Origin: Heterodontus francisci
Lineage: Eukaryota
Direction of reading: 5' to 3'
DNA length: 64,000 nucleotides
Assembly: GCF_036365525.1 (NCBI RefSeq)
Contig: NC_090404.1
Span: 4,216,001 to 4,280,000, forward strand
The position numbers were made by a program, and so were the translations under genes. Below the pieces are notes generated by a model. That model was not told where the DNA came from. It worked only from the letters and a program-made list of their open reading frames with translations, and made no database searches. This document shows, piece by piece, positions 7,652-57,971 of the stretch; the stretch's first letter is position 1, and every line of letters starts with the position of its first letter.

Positions 7652-8064
7652 GTGTATTTGTGTTTACCTGTCCTGATTTCTCAGTTAAGTATTGGGGGTG
7701 ACGGGCTGATTCTCGGAGATAGACGTTGGTTAATTTGATATTGCTCTGTTCTTGCAGGATATTGTCGAGGAGACTCCGTTTCACAGACACCGGCTGTAAT
7801 CACAGTAAGTGAAGGAGACGATGTTCGGTTGCACTGTGATTATACAACTACAAGCAGCAGCAATCCTTACCTATTCTGGTACCGTTAGTATCCCAGTGGA
7901 TACATGGAATATCTGCTGCAAAGAAACAAATACAGTGAGGACCGAGAAAGATTTCCAGAGGACCGTTTTTCAGCGGAGCTCGATGATTCGATCCGAACCA
8001 TCCCACTGAAAGAATCTAAAACAGAACTGACAGACTCTGCGGTGTACTACTGCGCACTGAGACC
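7652..8064 (+). pseudogene. TCR alpha/delta-type V pseudogene (V-d), nearly intact: leader 7652-7688, V exon 7758-8064
   Basis: YCRGDSVSQTPAVITVSEGDDVRLHCDYTTTSSSNPYLFWYR*YPSGYMEYLLQRNKY...DRFSAELDDSIRTIPLKESKTELTDSAVYYCALRP; single TAG at 7886-7888; leader begins with GTG. Confidence 0.92.
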
Positions 8065-8103
8065 CACAGAGACACAGAGCTGGGCTGATCCTGAACAAAA
8101 ACT
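8065..8103 (+). other. 23-RSS of V-d
   Basis: cacagag + 23 nt + acaaaaact. Confidence 0.9.
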
Positions 8104-8279
8104 GTCAGAGAGTCTCTCAACATCACAGCAAGTTAGGGAAACATTGTGATTGGAGGCGAGTGTCTGCATTAGTGATTAGAACTTGTACTGTTAATGTTAA
8201 TATACAGTTATCCTTTTTCCTGCAATGTTTCACTTTTCAAATAATGATCTAATTTCCTTTTAAAAGTAACGATTGAATC

Positions 8280-34700: not shown

Positions 34701-35155
34701 TACCACTGCTCAAAATAGATCAAAATATCAGAAGGCTATTTTTGACCACTGAAGCTTTCTGCATAATTTTATTTCAAACATATTTAAAGACTTATTGTTT
34801 CTATTAGATCAGAAAACCTGCAGCAACTAGATGTCACCCAGATTAAACATTGCAGAAACGTCAAACGGTTTAACAACAGTTTGGTATTTAAAGTAGCCCA
34901 AACACTCAGTCCCATCAACAAATAAACACCAAATCACATCAATCTGGAGCTGAATCCTTCAACAGTACCGTGTGTAAAGAAACCATTAAGTTCTTTAATC
35001 CCTTTGCAGCAGAATCACATAAAACATTGCAACAAATCTCAATATAGAATCCACCAAATCCACTTTTCAGTGAACGACTGTATCATTACAATAAACAGAA
35101 ATATAAAATTAAAAACACAAATAAAACAGTTAATGAATAAATGTATGTTTCTTAC

Positions 35156-35203
35156 CTGCAGTCACCGTCACCATGGTCCCTTGTCCCCAGTACTCAAGAT
35201 AGT
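35156..35203 (-). CDS. IGHJ: JH segment
   Basis: YLEYWGQGTMVTVTA with WGxG motif and gtaag donor at 35155. Confidence 0.95.
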
Positions 35204-35205
35204 CC

Positions 35206-35220
35206 GGTATGGCAGTGGGT
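35206..35220 (+). other. D1 segment (ggtatggcagtgggt), inverted relative to V/J/C and fused to JH
   Basis: G-rich D-like 15-mer on the + strand followed by a 22-spacer RSS; abuts JH through cc (35204-35205), palindromic to its gg end. Confidence 0.8.
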
Positions 35221-35258
35221 CACGGTGCTGTACAGAGCGAGTTCTTCATCCAAAAACC
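35221..35258 (+). other. 22-bp-spacer RSS (D1 3' type)
   Basis: cacggtg + 22 nt + ccaaaaacc. Confidence 0.9.
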
Positions 35259-35569
35259 TCAGACAGGGAGTTTGCTCAAACCAGCGATCACTAACACGGC
35301 AGATGGTCCTTAAACAATGAGGGTTAAATATAAAATTGGGGAAATACAATATTGATTTGTAAAATTGTATAAAAGTCTCCTGCTTTATTCATGTTGACTG
35401 TCACGCTAAATCAGCACAGATGATTCAGAAATATTGCGATCCCTTTATAAATATAATGACTGGTATAAACTGAATTATCTCACTGATGTACTCTTAGGGT
35501 GATTGGAATCATGTTTTTGAGAGCGCTGTGAAATGTAATCTCTGTATTTTACAGTTAACAGTCCGCCGC

Positions 35570-35638
35570 AGTATTTGACACGGTATGTCTCACTGTGATA
35601 TATTGGGTGGCACAGCAGTTACTGTCAATACAAAAACT
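35570..35638 (+). other. D2 segment (35598-35610, atatattgggtgg) flanked by 12/12 RSSs
   Basis: agtatttga-12-cactgtg | atatattgggtgg | cacagca-12-acaaaaact. Confidence 0.93.
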
Positions 35639-35964
35639 CCCTCAGCACTAATTGATGAGTCTGGGTCAGTGCTCGCTTTAACAATCCAACTATATATACA
35701 GTGAAGTTCTATTTGTGTCCAGCACTGTCCTCCTAGCACGGTTTATTATGGATAAACGGATTAATTATTCATTCATCAGTTGGTGATTTCAATAATTGCT
35801 GATATGTTACTGTGTGAAATATAAATCATCAGGGAAATTTATAAAGAGTGAAAAGAATTATTAATGCAGTTATAATTTTACAAAGAACCATCAAGATTTT
35901 ATTTTGCCTCTGGAGTGTGGATATTTAAAATAATAATGGATTTCTCACTATTCTGTGCAGAGCC

Positions 35965-36031
35965 AGTTATTGTGTGACCCAGCCAAGGGAATGTAACACT
36001 GTGCACAGTGACACTAACCTGCACAAATACT
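35965..36031. other. Precise RSS signal joint: 23-RSS fused head-to-head to 12-RSS
   Basis: agttattgt-23-CACTGTG|CACAGTG-12-acaaatact with zero intervening bases (GTGCAC at 36001-36006). Confidence 0.95.
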
Positions 36032-36421
36032 GCACTCACTCTCTGTTCAGTACTGCCTCCCAATATTCACTTCAAATAAAAATTCACTTCTGATCTAATT
36101 CAGAATATATCCAAAAGTTTACACCATGCAGTAGGAATTGAACCCAGCTCCAAGTAACACCCTCCAGATATCAGTCACATTAAAACTAGCATCTTATCCA
36201 GATTTGCAATTGCTGATACTATTAACATTAAAAATCAGCACAGCCAAAATTAGTCGTCAGTACTTCGGTTAGTGTCTTAGATTTGTACCATTGAATTTTC
36301 ACTGTGCTACTTGTGTGAGAGACGGTCTATGGCCTGGTTCTGAACACTGCCGTTAATATTGTATTTAATAAAATTACTGACCATCAGTTTATGATGGAAG
36401 TTATCGAATTCTCTCTCCATA

Positions 36422-36460
36422 TGTTCTTGTACATGTCCAGCCCTGGTTCCTCTCATTGTG
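36422..36460 (-). other. VH 23-RSS
   Basis: Minus strand cacaatg + 23 nt + acaagaaca. Confidence 0.93.
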
Positions 36461-36765
36461 ATCTCTTGCACAGTAATAGATGGCGGTGTCTTCAGTCTTC
36501 AAGCTCTTCATGTCCAAAGCAAAAATGTTTTTGGAAGTGTCTTTGGACGCAGTAAATCGATCTTTAATCCCTGGGGCGTAGTAGTTGCTGGATGAACTAT
36601 AGTAGTGAACCAGCCACTCCAGCCCCTGTCCGGGAACCTGCCGGACCAAGCTCATCCAGTAGCTGCCAAGAGTGAACCCGCTGGTTTCACAGGTCAGTCT
36701 CAGGGAGCCTCCGGGTTTCCCGGTCTCTGCCTCTGGCTGAGTCAACACGATATCCGAATGGACAC
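36461..36765 (-). CDS. IGHV: IgM VH exon (open frame; conserved FR2 Trp replaced by Leu)
   Basis: [51 protein letters not shown]...RFTASKD...[10 protein letters not shown]. Confidence 0.96.
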
Positions 36766-36890
36766 CTGTAAAAAATATCAAAAACCCCGAGAATTAATCC
36801 TGGAGAAATGATTCCTGACTCTGTAATATTCCAGAGAGAGACTATCACTGATCCAATTAGTGAGAGACTCGGACAGTAAAAACTACTCAC

Positions 36891-36936
36891 GGTATAAGAA
36901 AACCAGCAACAGACTGAGAGAAATCGCCGACCTCAT
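36891..36936 (-). CDS. IGHV: IgM VH leader exon
   Basis: MRSAISLSLLLVFLY + c|gtgagt; 46 nt (phase 1); 125-bp intron to V. Confidence 0.93.
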
Positions 36937-37023
36937 CCTTCTGGCAATTCGGGGAAAATGGTTCTGACAAGAACTCACTGAGCAAACCGGCTCCCGCACT
37001 GTTGTATTGCAGTCCCAGTGACC

Positions 37024-37062: not shown

Positions 37063-38737
37063 CGCCGCCTATAGATTCCCTGATAGAGGCGGTAACTGGA
37101 TCCACGTCCCACCTTCCACATCATCAACAGAATGGACTCATATCATTACACTGAGTTATTATTAAATGCGAACTTTTTATCTGCATCCAGGGATAGTCAG
37201 TTGGCTGTGTGGTTTCAATGCAATGTGTGACTTGGTACTCAATGGAACTGTTGCAGTGAAGAATGAGTCAGTAATAAACAATTGCATTGTGGGCTATGAA
37301 CAAAATTCCTTTATTTCCTCAACTCATCACAGGGGATGTGAATCACTAAGATTAAATTACGTTACCAAGGTCAAAAGTTACTGATAGTATGTATCAATTC
37401 ATCTCCCGTTATCTATCCCCTCGATCAATACCAGTGAAGTATCCCCAATAATTTGAATTGTTATCAAGTTATGCAATTAAATGCGGGACATCAGTAAAGT
37501 GATTCTATTTTCAATTTGACTGGCTGTAGTTATACGATTTAGGATCAGAATGAATAGAAGCGCCTCGTATTATACAAGTCTCTCTCTCTGTCTGCATTTC
37601 TCGAGCTGCACCTTACTATGACTCGACGCCAGTCCTTTAAAAATTACCGAATACAGAAGTCCGCTTGCCGTGACACGGAAAATTCATATCAGCTTTTGAA
37701 AAAGAGAATCTAGTGAATCAGTATCAATACGGTGATCAGGAAATCTATCCCTGATACCCAGATCATTGCAGCTAACATTAATAACGACAGACTGTTTAAC
37801 ACGCACTGGTATCAGGAACACAGAATATCAGGACTTAAAGCTATGCTACAAAATATCACAAAAAGAAACGCTTTATTTGTTGTGGAAACGGAACACAAAC
37901 TGGGCATTTCTCTAACCACTGATATCTCCACTGAGAGGGATGGATATGCAATCCAAATTATCAGATATTAAACTGTCCGCAGCTGTTATCAGTAATGAAA
38001 GAGTCTTTATAGTTTGAATGTGATACACAGCTCTGTGAGAAAATTCATGGAAATGCAGCGGGTTCAGAGCAATTCCACCTATTTCATTATTTACTTTACG
38101 ATTCCCAATTTTCTATTTCCGATGTGGATGTGAGGGTCATTAAAATCTCTCTCTACAACTTCATGTAATAGAAATAAATGGTCTTAATGATTCAGAATAA
38201 TATTGTATTGTCATGTGTCAATTTATTATTTTGCGCTCCCAGTTTATAATGATATGAGCAGTGAGTTTACCGAAAATCATTCTTTAGACGTGATACCGTG
38301 AAATGATTTATTTTTTGTAAGAGCGCTGCTGAATAGTTAATATTTAAATGGTTAAATGCCACCTTTGTCCATTCATATTCACACTAATCTGCCCCACACA
38401 GTATTTGGCACCAACCCAGCCGACTGCCATCAGGGAGACTCAAACAGCAATGTCATTTACAGGAAGCATCTGGGGTTCTGTGCAGTAAATCAAAGATCTG
38501 TTTCCTCGTTACTGACCGCTTGGCTACAAACCAACTTCAAACCCTGACCATTGTCAATGAGGCCTATTGATAAACAAATCTGCCCAGCAACAATACTGGA
38601 GTTAATTTTATTTTTTCAGTTGCTTGCCGAGGTGAACTGTTCCCATCTCTCAGCAAAGGAAATATATCCAGTGTCTCAGACACCCTTTTAGGACCAACAG
38701 TCTGAGGAACTGTGCAGCATATCATAACATTGTAATC

Positions 38738-45940: not shown

Positions 45941-48900
45941 ACTCGTTCGTGCTTTTCTCTGAAATAACTTTTAACGGGAGCTTGATAAATGAATAACCAT
46001 AAGGGACTCATTGATTATTTTCATGTATTGAAATTAGTTTTAAACATCTATTTCAATCAACTTAGACTTTGTGTGATAGGGTAATTTTCTTTCTTTTTAT
46101 TGCCATTGTCCATATGCAATTTTAAAGTGTGCAATGTTATTCTGATCGAGCAGCTGAGAGTTATGGCATTAGCTGGATTTTAGCATCCTGCACCAGCCCA
46201 TCTAGCGGTGCTGTGTGGTCACGGTTCCAGACCCTGGCTGACACAGTCAGTTGTTCAGACGAAAGCTAAATAGAATATCCTGCAGGAAAAACATCCCTCA
46301 GCAATAAAAGGAATCTGTGAGCAATTTTCACAGTACAACACAACAGTGAATTCGTAAACTTTCACACAAAGTTTATCACTAAGTCGAGTAAAGTTCATTA
46401 CACCTTTCCTCTGTTCCCTCAATCCTAGTTGATCACTGGGAGATGGTTACATTACGCCAGTTGACACTGACCATTGTTTGTAAAATTTAGCGACATCATT
46501 ATTTTTCTACTCGTCGTCCACGGCCTCGTGAAATGAGAACTGAAACAAGGCCTATTTTAAATATAAACAGATACATGGTCCGGTAATACACATTACATTA
46601 CAATCGGCCCTGTTTACATTACATTTGGCCCTATTTCTGTTGATGTTACTGTGGTCTTGTCTCAGTTTTAAATGCAGAAACGTTTGCCTCTTAGTATAGC
46701 AAACAAGATTCTGTTCCAGTCATTACTGCACTAGGCCAACTCCCTCTCTCTCTCCCTCTCTGTTTATAATGCACCACCTCCTCTCCCAGTTGCTAAACCA
46801 TGTCTCTATTTCCATTACACCAGACCCTGCCTCTGTTATTACTCAACTAAATTAATTCTGCTGATATTTCACTGTCCCAGTTTATGTTACTAGAGATGCT
46901 GCCTCCTTTATTGTTGCACTAGACTACGCTTCTACTCACATTTCACAAGGCCCTGTCTCACATATTACTACACTGGGCCATATCTCTGTTTCTATTAAGC
47001 AAAGCCCTGTCTCAGCTTACAACATAAGACCATGTGCTGTTATTAGTGCAGGAGACCAATTCTCTGCTTATAATACATTCGGCCTTGCTCCGTTATTACT
47101 GCACTAAATCATGTCCTACCTTTATTACATTTCCTTTGCTCTGAGGAGAATACCTCAAGTCTTAAATTATATTTTAGAATTTTATTTCCTTCTACCCAAA
47201 ACGTAATTGCAGATCATTTAATACAATTGGCCAAGGCTCGAGATTTATTGAACACATCGATTTCGTTGTTTATATTACATTAGACCATGTTGTTTGTTTC
47301 TATTCTGCTCGGCTGCCTCAGATGTTGCGGCGCGAGGCCATATCTCTATTCATTCCACTAAACGATGTCACATTCGATAATGTTGTAGTTTGTGTCTCAG
47401 TTATTAGTGAAGTAACCAGAAAAAATATTGGAAGATGTCGGAGAGGAAATGGTGACGGTAAAACATTAAAATGAATTTTATGGAAGCAGAAATGGTGCGA
47501 AATTCACATAAAGCAGCAAATGTTTCATTCCTTTACAAACAATGGAAATAATAAATCAGTCATTTACAGATTTATTAACTTCACATCATGTACAGGTAGT
47601 ATCATTGTTACCATCACTTGCACAAATCATTACACACGCGAGGTGTTTACCATCAGCTTCTGTGTGATGGTGAGGTGATCACTTAACAATAAAGCACAGA
47701 GACTGGTGAGTCGCTGCTCATTACCCCTCGGTCTGCAATGACATTTTGAATTAAATAAATGCTTTAAAAATTGGTGAAGATACTTACTTATGTTTATGGA
47801 GTTGTAAACAATATGGTGTGCTTTGCACAGATACAAATGGAGTTACTTTGGTGAAAGAGTGAAACCAGGGGCTAAATGGGGACTGTGCTGACGAAAAGCC
47901 CCTGTTTGAATGACTGCATTTAGCACCCAATTTCCATCTAATTGATGATTGCCATAAAATTGAACTTGTCTGGAAATGTTAAACCAGAGACCAGCAGGTT
48001 CAACACCCAGGTGCTGATTAACCACAATATTCTTGAATCAATATATGTGGGCTCCATGCACGCACTTCTACTATAAGTGTGAGGTTGGCGGTCTGACACA
48101 TGGTAACAAGTTTCAGGATGGCTCAGGAACCAACTGAGTGGCTGCACAGATTCTCCGAAAGCCTTGTAGGTCCTGGTGGAGGAGATCCAGGAGAGGAGGG
48201 ATGTCCTGTACCCGCAATGTACCCTTCTGTCTCACTATCCTGCAGCAGCTGGTGCTACTCTGCCTGGCCTCATGTCCTCCTCCCATTCGTACACCAGGAT
48301 GCCGATGACCTCGCTGTGAAGGCCATTCCTTGAGAGGCAGGTTCTGCCACAAGTGGCGGAACCCCTTCAACCAAGATCAACAAATTAAACTAACAAACGT
48401 TCAGCCATTTACCTCTATTACAAATTTCTCTGTGCAGAAATCGGCCACATTCATCTGGAATTAGTTGCACTTCAAATTTTGGGACCTCCTAGAGAAGGTG
48501 ATGGGCTGGTACATCAACGCAAGTTGTTTCTTGGTGTATTAATATCAGAAGCAGGAACTGACATCGACATTTTCACAAGACGAGCAATGGCCAAACACAA
48601 CCACAAGGTGTCAGTGAAAGCCCGATTGTTTACATTACTTGAAACAGGTGCTGCCTTCATTATTACTGCTCCAGATCCTGTTTCTGTTTATATTACACTA
48701 GATGCTGTCTCTGTTTATATTAAGCTAGAACTTGCTTTTGTCTATATTATACTAGATGTTGTCTCTGTTTATATTATACTCGGTCATTTTCCAATTCGTA
48801 TTCCAACAAATATTGTCTCTGAGCATATAAAAACAGTCCATTGCTCAGCGATTCCGACATTGGCCCAATCCCAGGTGTTAATACTCTGGACCATGTTTCT

Positions 48901-50189
48901 GCTTGCACCACACAATACCCTGTCTAGGTCATTCCTGCACGAGATCACATTTCTGTTTCTATCACACAAAGCACTGTCTCTGTTATTACTGCAATGGACC
49001 ATCTCTCTGTTACTACTACACGGAATTCTGTCTCACCGAGTGCTGCACTTGTGCATGTCTCAGATGATTGAAATCGAGGTTCTGTATCAATAATTACTGC
49101 ACTGGACCTTGTCTCGGTTTTTCTTCTAATGGACCCTGTCTCACGTATGACTACATTCTATCATGTCCCTGTTCTCATTGCACAAGACACTGTCCCAATT
49201 ATTATTGCACTCGACAGATTTCAGATTACACTTGATCATGTATCTGTTTAACTGACACCAGAACATGTCTGTTAATACGACACGAGACACAATCTCAGTT
49301 TTTACTGAGCTGGACCCAGTGTTGGTTCATATTACCGTAGATCTTGTATCAATAATTGGTGCACTGGAGCCTGTCTCAGTATTCCTGCACCAGGCCCTGT
49401 CCCTGTTTATATTACCACAGTGCCTGTCTCTGATCATATTGCACCAGTCCCTCTCTCAGTTATTACTGCTCTGGACCCTATCCCAGCTGCTACTACACAG
49501 AACTATGTCTCTGTTTATATTAAGTTCGGCAAAGTCTCTGTTATTGCTGCACCAAACCCTGTGTCTGTTTATAGTACACTAAACCCAGTCTCAATTAGTG
49601 CTGGACCATTCAATGTCTCCGTTCATATTACACTGGAACATGTCCCTGTTAATACTCCACTTGAACATGTCCCTGTTCAAATTAAAATAAGCCTTGTCTT
49701 TTCATTACTAATGTGTTTATATTGCAATTGGAACACTCTCTGTTTATATTACACAGGACCCTGTCTCTTTTTATATGACACTTGATCCTGTCTCTTTTTA
49801 TATTACACTAGACCCTGCCTCTGTTTCTATTCCATTTGACCCTTTCTCTGTTTATATTACACTCGAACATGACTCAGTTACGACTGGACTTCGTTGCTTC
49901 TCTGTTTATACTACATTCGACCCTATCTCTGTTCTTACTGCTCCAGGCCTTGGCCATGTTTACATTACACTCGACCTTATCTCTGGTCTTTCTGCACCAA
50001 GCCCTGTCACTGTTTATATTACTCTCGACCCTGTCTCTGATTGCATTACACTCTGCCGTGCCTCTGTTATTATTAAACTAGGCCCTGTCTCTGTTTATAT
50101 TACTTTGGACGCTGACTCTGTTTATATTGCAGTTGACCCTGTCTCTTTTTATATTTCACGAGACCCATTTCGGCAAAAGTGACCATAAC

Positions 50190-52780
50190 GCTGGAAGGTT
50201 TAAGGTAGTTATGGAAAAGGACAAAGCTAGATCAGAAATAAAGGTACTGAATTGGGGGAAGGACGATTTCAATACGATAAAACAGTATCTGGCCTAAGTG
50301 GACTGGGAGCCGCTACTTGGAGGAAAGTCTACACCAGACCAGTGGGAGTCATTCAAGGAGGAAACAGTGAGAGTTCAAAGACAACATGTACCCGTTAAGG
50401 TGAAGGGAACCCTGGATGTCAAGGGATATAGAGGATTGGATCAGGAAAAAAGGAAGCTTTTGGCAGATTCACAGCGCTGAAAGCAGTGGAGGTACTAGAT
50501 GAGTATAGAAAGTGTAGCAGGGGGGTACTTAAAAAAGTAGTTAGGAGAGAGAAGAGTAGATAAGAAAAAACACTGGCAGGCTAGATAAAGGAAAATTCTA
50601 AAGCGTTTTCTAAGTATATTAAGGGTAAGAGGATAACCAGGGAAAGAGTAGGACCCATTAGGGACCAAAGGTGCAATCTCTGTGTGGAGCCGGAGGGCAT
50701 TGGTGAGGTTTTAAATGATTACTTTTAATCTGAGTTCACCATAGAGAAGGTCAATGTTGGTGTAGAGATCAGGGAAGGGGATTGTGATATACTTGAACAT
50801 ATTAGCATTGAAAGGGAGGAAGTATTAGCGGTTCTGGTGGGCTTAAAAGTGGATGAATCCCCAGGCCCAGATGAGATGTATCCCAGGCGGTTATGTGAGG
50901 CAAGGGAAGAGATAGCATGGACTCTGACACAAATTTTCAAATCTGCTCTGGCCACAGGAGAGGTACCAGAGGATTGGAGGACAGCGAATGTGGTACCATT
51001 ATTCAAGAAGGGTAGTAGGGATAAACCAGGGAATTACAGGCCGGTGAGTGTAACATCAGTGGTAAGGAAATTATTGGAAAAAACTCTGAGGGATAGGATT
51101 AATCTCCACTTGGAGAGGCAGGGATTAATCAGGGATAGGGAGCATGGCTTTGTCAGGGGGAGATCGTGTCTAACTAACTAGATTGAATGTTACAAGGCGG
51201 TGACTCAATGGATAGATGAGGATAAAGCAGTTGATATTCTACATGGACTTCAGTCAGGTTTTTGATAAGGTCCCACATGGGAGATTGTTTAAAAAGATAA
51301 GATCTCATGGGATCCAGGGCAATTTGGCATATTGGATCCAAAATTGGCTCAGTAGCAGGAGGCAGAGGGTTATGGTTGAGGGTTGTTTTTGCAAGTGAAA
51401 GCCTTTGACCAGTGGTGTACCGCAGGGATCGGTGCTGGGACCCATACTGTTTGTAGTGTACATTAATGATTTAGGCGTGAATATAGGAGGTGTGATCAGT
51501 AAGTTCGCAGATGACATGAAAATTGGTGGTGCCGTAAATAGTGAGGAGGATGGCCTTCCATTACAGGACGATATCGATGGGCTGGTAAGATGGGCGGAAC
51601 CGTGGCAAATAGAATTTAATCCTGAGAAGTGTGAGGTGATGCATTTTTGGAGTACTAATCAGGCAAGGGAATATATCGTGGATGGCAGGAACCTATGAAG
51701 TACAGAAGGTCAGAGGGACCTTGGAGTAATTGTCCATAGATCACTGAAAGCAGCAGCACAGGTAGATAAGATGGTTAATATAAAAGCAAAGTACTGCGGA
51801 TGCTGGAAATCTGAAACAAAAACAAGAAATGCTGGAATCACTCAGCAGGTCTGGCAGCATCTGTGGAAAGAGAAGCAGAGTTAACGTTTCAGGTCAGTGA
51901 CCCTTCTTCGGATAAGATGGTTCGCAGGGCATATGAAAATTATTAGAGGCATTTATGGGATCGATAGGAAGAAACATTTTCCCTCATGCGGATAGGTCAA
52001 TAACTAGGGGACATAGATTTAAGATAAGGGGCAGGAGTTTTAGAGGGGAGTGGAGGAAAGAAAATTCACCCAGAGGTTGATTGGAATCTGGAACACACTG
52101 CCTGAAGAGGTTGTAGAGGCAGGAACACACACGACATTTAAGAAGTATTTAGATGAGCACTTGAAATGCCATAGTATACAAGACTATGGGTCAAGTGCGG
52201 GCAAGTGGGATTACTTTTGGACAGGTGCTTGATGGTCAGCGCAGGGGCTCTGGGCCGAAGGGCCTGCTTCTGTGGTGTAAAACTCTATGACTCTGTAGGA
52301 TTCTTGACTTTATGAGCCGAGGCATTGAATATAAGAGCAGGGAGGTTATGATGGAGCTGTATAAAACACTGGTTAGGCTACAGCTGGAGTACTGTGAACA
52401 GTTCTGGGCACCACACTATTGGAAGGATGTGATTGCAGCCTCAGGAGAGGGTGCACAGGAGATTCACCAGGATGTTGCCTGGGCTGAAGCATTTCAGCTA
52501 TGCAGAGAGACTGAAAAGGCTAGGGTTGTTTTACTTAGATCAGAGAAGGCTGAGGGGAACATGATTGAGGTATACAAAATTATGAGGGGCAGTGATAGGT
52601 TGGATAGGAAGAAAATGTTTCGCTCAGCGGAGGCGTCAATAACCAGGGAGCATAGATTTAAGGTAAGGGGCAGGAGGTTTAGAGGGGATTTGAGGAATTT
52701 GTTTTTCACTCTGAGGATGGTTGGAATCTGGAATGCACTGCATGAAGAGGTGGTGGAGGCAGGAACCTTCACAACGTTTA
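50190..52780 (+). mobile_element. CR1 LINE ORF2 fragments inserted in the satellite
   Basis: SPGPDEMYPR, VPEDWRTANVVPLFKKG, SKFADDMK, LEYCEQFWAP. Confidence 0.9.
51777..51910. mobile_element. 134-bp Penelope-terminus insertion with a 12-bp target-site duplication
   Basis: gataagatggtt at both 51765-51776 and 51911-51922. Confidence 0.8.
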
Positions 52781-53681
52781 CACGATATAACACTAGACCA
52801 TGTTTCAGTTATGACTGGACTTCGTTGCATCTCGGTTTATATTACACTAACCCTATCTCTGTTCTTACTGCACCAGTCCCTGTCTCTGTTTATATTACAC
52901 TGGACCCTCTCTCGGTTTATATCACACTGGGCCATGTTGGTTTTTCACTGCACTAGGCCATGTTTCCAGTAGATGAAGAGATATTATTATAAATAAAGAT
53001 GTTAGACTGGAAATTGGTATCAGGTTACGGCCGAACGGACGCTTTTGGCTCGGCCGCCCTTTCTACCCAGGGCCTTGTGTTCAATTTCATTGCAGTCAAC
53101 GGAGTTGCTGTCTCTCCCGGGCGGTCAATCCGATAGTGACGCTTTCTGTGCCACTGCCTGAAACCAATTTCCATCTTTTGTGTTTGTGTGTTGGGCGGGT
53201 ATAATCATTTTCTGTATGGAAGAATACCTTTAACCTTGTTAATACCTATCAGTAGCTTGTGTGAAATTTCTAATTGCTCTGGTATTATGTGGGTAATATT
53301 TGTGTTGAAAGGATGGGCTGAATCCTGCAACAAGCTCCCAGAGACGGACTGGGTGGGATTGAAGGACAGGACTAAAGGTCAGTAATAGTGTACTGCACTT
53401 TACAATACTTGGTAACAAACTCTGTTGTGTTAAAGTGTACTAATTCACACTTGTGTTGTACTGTGACAATTCCTCACTTTTTAATGTTCAGGATATTTTT
53501 GTCGCTGCGGGATTTTCAATTTCGAATTCACCTGACCTCGTGATTGTGTTCGAAACAGCCTGGAACAGTGACCCCGCAGTCCCAACCGACAGGCTGCCGC
53601 AGGGTCCTAATGTCCACCAAGTTCAATCATCTGATCAACAGGGACAACTGAAATGAAAACACACAATGTTATATATCGGCG

Positions 53682-56839: not shown

Positions 56840-57730
56840 TTGATTCAGTGAGTTCAGTCTGCGAGAGAGGAGAGAGGTTCATTGAGTTCAGTCTGAGCAA
56901 GAGGAGAGAGGTTCAGTGAGTTCAGTCTGAGAGAGGACAGAGGTTCAGTGAGTTTAGTCTGAGAGAGAGGAGAGAGGTTCAGTGAGTTCAGTCTGAGAGA
57001 GAGGAGAGAGGTTCACTGAGTTCAGTCTGAGAGAGAGGCGAGTGATTCCGTGCGTTCAGTCTGAGAGGAGAGAAATTCAATGAGTTCAGTCTGAGACAGA
57101 GGAGAGAGGTTCAGTGAGTTCAGTCTGAGAGAGAGGAGATTGATTCAGTGAGTTCAGTCTGACAGAAAGGAGAGAAATTCAATGAGATCTGTCTGAGAGA
57201 CAGGAGAGAGATTCAGTGAGTTCAGTCTGAGCGAAAGGAGAGAGATTCAGTAAGTTCAGTCTGAGAGAGGAGAGAGTGGTTCACTGAGTTCAGTCTGAGA
57301 GAGAGGAGAGAGATTCAGTGAGTTCAGTCTGAGAGAGAGGGAATAGGTCCAGTGAGTTCAGTCTGAGCGAGAGAAGAGAGATTCAGTGAGTTCAGTCTGG
57401 AAGAGAGGAGAGAGGTTCAGTGAGTTCAGTCTGAGAGAGAGGAGAGAGATTCAGTGAGTTCAGTCTGAGAGAGAGGAGAGAGGTTCAGTGAGTTCAGTCT
57501 GAGAGAGAGGGGATAGGTCCAGTGAGTTCAGTCTGAGCGAGAGAAGAGAGATTCAGTGAGTACAGTCTGAAAGAGAGGATGGAGGTTCAGTGAGTTCAGT
57601 CTAAGAGAGAGAAGAGAGATTCAGTGAGTTCAGTCTGAGAGAGAGGAGAGAGATTCGGTGAGTTCAGTCTGAGAGAGGAGAGAGCTTCAGTGACTTCATT
57701 GCATCTGAGAGAGAGGTTCAATGAGTTCAG
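56840..57730 (+). repeat. Minisatellite, ~31-33-bp unit (ttcagtgagttcagtctgagagagaggagagagg), roughly 27 copies
   Basis: Seen directly. Confidence 0.95.
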
Positions 57731-57971
57731 TGACAGACGTGTTCGCCTGGGCAATGGAAGAGTCTGTGTGAGATCACTTTCTCAACAAGACCACACAACA
57801 GAATGTGTTGTGAATAGGTGTTATCGTTATTGAATGATACGTAATACTATTACATTTTGAATAAATTGAAATTGAATAAAATGTTGTACAACGCTTCATG
57901 CACATAATCACTTATGTTAGTGCAATGCATTGCATGCATTAAGAAGTATGTGTTCTGGGCACGCCGTATCC

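Follow-up and report, generated by a model that had tools for sequence, protein, structure and literature searches.

An inverted D1-JH joint and its reciprocal signal joint in an IgM heavy-chain cluster of the horn shark

Cartilaginous fish carry germline-joined immunoglobulin (Ig) genes, whose V (variable), D (diversity) and J (joining) segments have been found fused as VD-J, VD-DJ and VDJ heavy-chain clusters and as VJ light-chain genes (Lee et al. 2000, PMC2193156; review PMC5192425). RAG activity in shark germ cells was inferred from the light-chain genes, in which a possible palindromic (P) region of 2 bases and little sign of TdT were reported; the junctions of the joined heavy-chain genes were called too varied to tell the involvement of RAG, TdT or recombination signal sequences (RSSs) (PMC2193156). 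According to the review, sharks have their segments in a single orientation, "necessitating deletional rearrangements" (PMC5192425). A horn shark cluster variant with an inverted D1-D2 intervening sequence (Kokubu et al. 1988) is described in the commentary of Lewis and Wu (2000, PMC2193153). Here, we analyzed an immunoglobulin M (IgM) heavy-chain cluster on the minus strand of a 64,000-nucleotide stretch of the horn shark genome (Heterodontus francisci, contig NC_090404.1, positions 4,216,001 to 4,280,000; in the following the window, with its first base as position 1), in which D1 is joined in antisense to the heavy-chain J segment (JH). We consider it probable, at roughly 85%, that this joint is the coding-joint half of a standard RAG inversional recombination in the inherited DNA of one IgM cluster.

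The D1-J joint was followed to the base on the minus strand from 35258 to 35156, after which a splice donor is reached (Table 1). JH is preceded by an RSS with a 22-nt spacer (22-RSS), the antisense D1 and two G nucleotides (gg), which is the order proposed in a preliminary description of the stretch. The fused coding stretch comprises 65 nt and, as had also been claimed, stays open in the J frame when translated (PTAIPDYLEYWGQGTMVTVTA). An ordinary JH would consist of about 48 nt located directly behind a 23-spacer RSS; this one carries 17 extra nucleotides and a 22-spacer RSS instead. Processing of the coding joint amounts to zero trimming and the addition of two palindromic nucleotides. Both JH and the 15-nt D1 sequence are present in a single copy in the window.

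About 800 bp upstream of the D1-J joint in gene orientation, two heptamers are fused flush, with no base gained or lost. The fusion, CACTGTGCACAGTG, is an exact 14-nt palindrome at 35997-36010 with one exact copy in the window (chance expectation: none), flanked by the nonamer of a 12-spacer RSS on one side and that of a 23-spacer RSS on the other. A forward D1 is absent from the cluster, and this perfect signal joint occupies the place where D1 would be expected. Reading the 798 bp from 35206 to 36003 on the plus strand restores an ordinary D1-22RSS, 12RSS-D2-12RSS, 23RSS series, in the order D1, CACGGTG-22-CCAAAAACC, ~330 bp, nonamer-12-heptamer, D2, heptamer-12-nonamer, ~330 bp, nonamer-23-heptamer; in this reading the 22-spacer RSS is the signal behind D1. 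The reconstructed order is canonical, with signals pointing the same way before the event, and the signals used obey the 12/23 rule.

Both breakpoints coincide exactly with the heptamer/coding borders of a 12/23 pair. This bears on the possibility that the block was inverted without RAG, by replication error, by recombination between short inverted repeats or through misassembly, with ends that fell on RSS borders by chance. Such an origin is hardly credible given the exactness of both borders and the nature of the two junctions, of which one is a flush heptamer-heptamer fusion and the other a coding joint with a palindromic addition of 2 nt. Within RAG-mediated reactions, a hybrid joint of the type of Kokubu 1988 was rejected, since the junctions connect RSS with RSS and coding end with coding end. 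RAG transposition was rejected as well, as no RSS-ended insert with a target duplication is present.

To place the segment borders, four runs were aligned to 34900-37000 at 80% likeness. Two of them (X1, X5), from the same species, are clearly lymphoid RNA, with very high depth on leader, V and J and a leader-V splice at 36762/36888; the behaviour of X2 is that of DNA from the same sample, and X8 carries a different species label. X1 and X5 contain hundreds of V-to-J joints with inserted letters, and a loose read end at 35156 continues into the start of the Cmu1 exon (acceptor 27815-27814). Among the best-supported 15 of 208 joints, the J-side ends lie at 35191-35203, three distinct joints ending exactly at 35203, and one of the listed inserts reaches 35205. 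Sister J segments that share this 5' sequence thus start with ACTAT, a J of 65 nt is not the family norm, and gg does not belong to the germline J. The preliminary description had named a normal 65-nt JH, or a gg within the germline JH, as the finding that would speak against it; in the transcripts, the sister J stops at 35203.

The inserted letters run consistently from the J side to the V side. A D1-type motif adjoins V in at least 6 of the 11 listed inserts (plus strand ...CTGCTGTACC, sense GGTACAGCAG...), and a D2-type motif adjoins J in at least 4 of them (plus strand CCACC(C/T)(A/G)(G)TATAT). In sense, the D1 of the sister transcripts reads GGTAC(AG)CAGTGGG and their D2 is of the ATATAC/TTGGGTGG type, each being the reverse complement of its counterpart on the gene strand of the window; accordingly, the plus strand of the window holds the opposite strand of both motifs (GGTATGGCAGTGGGT for D1, ATATATTGGGTGG for D2). 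Both D segments are therefore upside down with respect to the expressed genes, which for D1 agrees with the antisense orientation assigned to it before. The D1 of the window differs from the expressed D1 consensus at 2/15 positions, and D segments are reported to differ little among horn shark clusters (PMC2191167). In one VDJ transcript (X1, 35191-36464), D1 is in forward orientation and the D2-like 8-mer behind it is inverted, which suggests either occasional inverted use of D2, as its two 12-RSSs would allow, or a variant cluster.

In principle, JH could also be a normal, unusually long germline segment of 65 nt with a 22-spacer RSS, its resemblance to D1 being coincidental. Long JH segments occur in other vertebrates, and the frame is open. 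This reading is nevertheless very improbable and already contradicted: the transcript J of the sisters ends at 35203, 13/15 positions of the additional stretch agree with the expressed D1 in reverse complement, the cluster lacks a forward D1, and a perfect signal joint occupies the place expected for D1.

The identity of gg can be approached from the same transcripts. In the listed inserts, D1 begins with GGTAC after nothing, C, GCGG or AGAGG and is never preceded by a constant CC, so that the cc (sense gg) is not D1 sequence. The palindromic relation of gg to the D1 end (cc|gg), which had been pointed out earlier, was seen here, with gg lying outside the D1 of the sister transcripts. It forms the inverted complement of the D1-terminal GG, which is what P nucleotides would yield if the D1 hairpin had been opened off-centre. 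An origin from the J end was rejected, as P nucleotides of a J starting with AC would be GT. By this palindrome, gg most likely represents two P nucleotides from the D1 hairpin; for two bases, an origin as non-templated (N) nucleotides is less probable but conceivable, and little trace of TdT is seen in germline-joined shark genes (PMC2193156).

Further support for the borders of the flipped block comes from assembled contigs. Three paralog contigs (X1 record 5, X2 records 14 and 15) align from the V side and end exactly at 36004, the heptamer|heptamer border. On the other side, the match of paralog contigs and of contigs of organism B begins at 35213, within D1, and continues across the 22-RSS and further; in one organism-B contig (record 27), the match extends over 35213-35379 and is followed by 96 letters unlike this J. 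X2 record 13, paralog DNA that is 86% alike over 35992-36260, differs from the other paralogs in that its alignment crosses 36004 by 12 nt and reaches into the second heptamer; it may derive from another cluster carrying a heptamer-heptamer fusion.

Altogether, the RAG inversion that we favor would have started from a cluster with the order V-23> <12-D1-22> <12-D2-12> <23-J. RAG would have brought together the D1 5' 12-RSS and the JH 23-RSS; because these two signals point the same way, joining would invert the 798-bp block rather than delete it. The signal ends would have been fused precisely (now 36031-35965), and the coding ends would have been joined untrimmed at 35206/35203 with two palindromic nucleotides from the opened D1 hairpin. 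This would account for the present arrangement, in which D1 lies in antisense 5' of JH, JH has taken over the former 3' RSS of D1 with its 22-nt spacer, and D2 with its two 12-RSSs lies upside down between the two joints.

Several points weigh against this interpretation. The D1, D2 and J borders of the sister clusters were derived from transcripts and alignment ends, and the underlying tables cover the best-supported 15 of 208 V-J joints and 12 of 474 inserts. A palindrome of 2 nt arises by chance in about 1 of 16 cases and is weak evidence for P nucleotides. Moreover, every run containing the stretch comes from one sample, possibly the assembly's own source.

This last point would also fit the capture, by the assembly, of a minor set of reads or of a lymphocyte clone that had rearranged somatically, with an ordinary V-D1-D2-J arrangement in the germ line. 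Inversional D-to-J joining via the 5' RSS of a D segment is indeed a known, rare somatic event in mammals. However, polyclonal tissue would not make one clone the majority path of a 64-kb contig, and the joint seems to be free of N nucleotides, as expected outside lymphocytes (PMC2193156). Besides that, the second heptamer seems to be entered in X2 record 13 too, which would mean inherited, duplicated copies. We therefore regard a somatic origin as improbable. The inability of a clone to dominate polyclonal tissue and the apparent lack of N nucleotides argue for an inherited joint, in which case RAG would have acted in the germ line.

Table 1 Features of the IgM cluster and of its two reciprocal joints (positions in the window)
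Feature	Position	Strand	Remark
Nonamer of the 22-spacer RSS, ggtttttgg (plus strand CCAAAAACC)	35258-35250	-	8/9 of consensus; originally D1 3' RSS
Spacer, exactly 22 nt	35249-35228	-	a spacer of 22 gives 8/9 nonamer matches, one of 21 gives 6/9
Heptamer caccgtg (plus strand CACGGTG)	35227-35221	-	6/7; coding-end CAC intact
D1 in antisense, 15 nt, acccactgccatacc (plus strand GGTATGGCAGTGGGT)	35220-35206	-	full length, untrimmed at the joint
gg between D1 and JH, forming a palindrome with the D1 end (cc|gg)	35205-35204	-	outside sister J and sister D1
JH, 48 nt, actatcttgagtactggggacaagggaccatggtgacggtgactgcag / DYLEYWGQGTMVTVTA, untrimmed	35203-35156	-	gt donor at 35155-35154
Leader exon	36936-36891	-	open
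VH exon	36765-36461	-	open frame; Pfam V-set match
VH 23-spacer RSS (cacaatg / 23 / acaagaaca)	36460-36422	-	signal of V
Signal joint: nonamer agtatttgt, 12-nt spacer, cactgtg|cacagtg, 23-nt spacer, nonamer acaataact	36031-35965	-	12-RSS and 23-RSS, flush
D2, coding 35610-35598 (13 nt, ccacccaatatat), 12-spacer RSS on both sides	35570-35638	-	inverted along with D1
Cmu1 to Cmu4 exons with secretory tail	27813-24419	-	open; same cluster

The search within the window identified one IgM heavy-chain cluster on the minus strand and one weak V-like match. The cluster has the V-D-D-J-Cmu composition of an IgM-type minilocus. In a protein search that used the V exon alone, without a joined V-J-C model, this exon shared 85% identity with horn shark HV01_HETFR and 67-77% with the VH of other sharks and a chimaera. 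The segments of the cluster are spaced by ~450, 377 and 387 bp, and J lies 7.3 kb from Cmu1. These distances fit those of shark miniloci, as distances of about 400 bp between segments and of 6.3-6.8 kb to Cmu1 are reported for nurse shark clusters (PMC2435157). Upstream of the leader, the sole octamer-like motif is atgcagat at 37180-37187 (minus strand), with 1 mismatch and ~250 bp ahead of the ATG. An additional RSS-like site (CACAGTG / 24 nt / ACACTAACC, 36267-36306, minus strand) is located in the spacer separating the V RSS from the signal joint and is oriented as the V RSS.

Elsewhere in the window, the weak V-like match at 7772-8149 (plus strand) represents a T-cell receptor (TCR)-like V fragment (...DSAVYYCAL...) that falls below the Pfam V-set cut-off (E 0.0013), is 31% identical to the VH and is split over frames. 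It is probably a V pseudogene, judged by its broken frame, and fits IgM clusters lying near TCR genes. A GA-rich tandem array with 26 copies of a 34-nt unit and dispersed tandem arrays with a 27-nt unit were found at 56844-57731 and 48673-52937, and GC skew is strong at 16-20 kb and at 56-62 kb of the window.

As a further question, we considered whether the cluster may have retained the ability to rearrange. The geometry permits pairing of the V 23-RSS with the upstream 12-RSS of the inverted D2, and of its downstream 12-RSS with the 22-RSS, the latter two being the signal pair of normal D1-D2 joining. To this extent the 12/23-competent layout put forward before (VH23 to inverted D2, then inverted D2 to the 22-RSS of the antisense D1 and J) agrees with the arrangement found. 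After an event as described above, the cluster could be in active use and produce complementarity-determining regions 3 (CDR3s) from antisense D2 and D1 (ending ...PTAIPDYLEYW), with the signal joint as an extra recombination target. In favor of such use, the layout obeys the 12/23 rule, every RSS has kept the CAC beside its coding end, the inverted D2 is stop-free in all frames, the inverted D1-J is open in the J frame, and the V, leader and Cmu exons are open.

Other features make active use unlikely. Among the best-supported joints listed for the two lymphoid RNA runs, the J side never extends beyond 35205 and no product of this cluster itself was found, which for such a selection is weak evidence of absence. 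Codon ttg (36649-36647) places a Leu (LVRQ) in framework region 2 of the V segment, at the site of the invariant Trp (WVRQ) that is present in each of the 10 shark and chimaera VH compared; this substitution may point to a relaxation of constraint on the cluster. The perfect octamer ATGCAAAT was not found near the V promoter or upstream of the leader. In addition, the two best RSSs of the cluster belong to the signal joint and would act as a decoy by competing for the V RSS. In our judgement, the product of the RAG inversion is most probably a scar of neutral or slightly harmful effect rather than an adapted gene.

Since an inversion retains both products, the enzyme and the exact signal pair are identifiable when the signal joint, which is flush, is read together with the coding joint, which is untrimmed and has a palindromic dinucleotide. 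In one cluster of one assembly, germline RAG activity would thereby be shown to be able to flip D segments, to pass the signal of a D segment to J and to leave a signal joint between V and D. Steps of these kinds have been proposed for the evolutionary change of segment orientation, spacer classes and D segments in antigen-receptor loci. A search of the full-text literature, which covers few subscription papers and is not proof of absence, returned no report of a shark cluster with a germline inversional coding joint together with its signal joint. No match to the J core was obtained in a metagenome scan, as expected. Tentatively, the locus could represent the first case of both reciprocal products of one RAG reaction lying side by side in inherited vertebrate DNA, in a cluster that perhaps still rearranges with antisense-D CDR3s, although we hold this to be doubtful. 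If true, it would directly prove that standard RAG recombination, besides the hybrid-joint type, takes place in the germ cells of sharks, and it would give a present-day instance of the germline signal joint that was suggested in 2000 as a starting material for new D segments and for RSS swaps.

Among known systems, the same reaction is found in mammals, where somatic inversional D rearrangements occur at the heavy-chain locus and inverted D segments are used in human repertoires (PMC2189376, PMC11775173), and where inversional V-kappa to J-kappa joining retains the signal joint (PMC2118803). There, too, a D segment joined via its 5' 12-RSS becomes inverted and both products stay on the chromosome, but these cases arise in lymphocytes and are not inherited. 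For the germ line, Lewis and Wu (2000, Fig. 2B ii, PMC2193153) drew a hypothetical origin of D segments from signal joints; their commentary gives shark support for cases i and iii only, that is, for joined genes and hybrid joints, not for signal joints. The present locus resembles their scheme in that a signal joint, probably inherited, lies between V and J elements. Their hypothesis requires intercluster joining and a junctional insertion, whereas the signal joint here is intracluster and without insert.

The closest relatives of the locus remain the shark genes themselves. With the germline-joined genes it shares segments that are pre-joined, a RAG-type coding joint with little or no N addition and a possible 2-base P region. 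The known cases of this group are deletional, in sense orientation and have lost the signal joint; in contrast, the rearrangement described here is inversional, with D1 in antisense, D2 unjoined and inverted and the signal joint kept in cis. As far as the variant of Kokubu et al. is described in the commentary of Lewis and Wu, it is likewise an inversion within a V-D-D-J-C cluster; it lies in the germ line and is attributed to RAG as a site-specific recombinase. According to that description, it is a hybrid-joint product, in which an RSS-ended spacer was flipped and signals were swapped while the coding segments stayed in place. Here, a standard signal joint along with a coding joint was formed, and the coding segments themselves were flipped.
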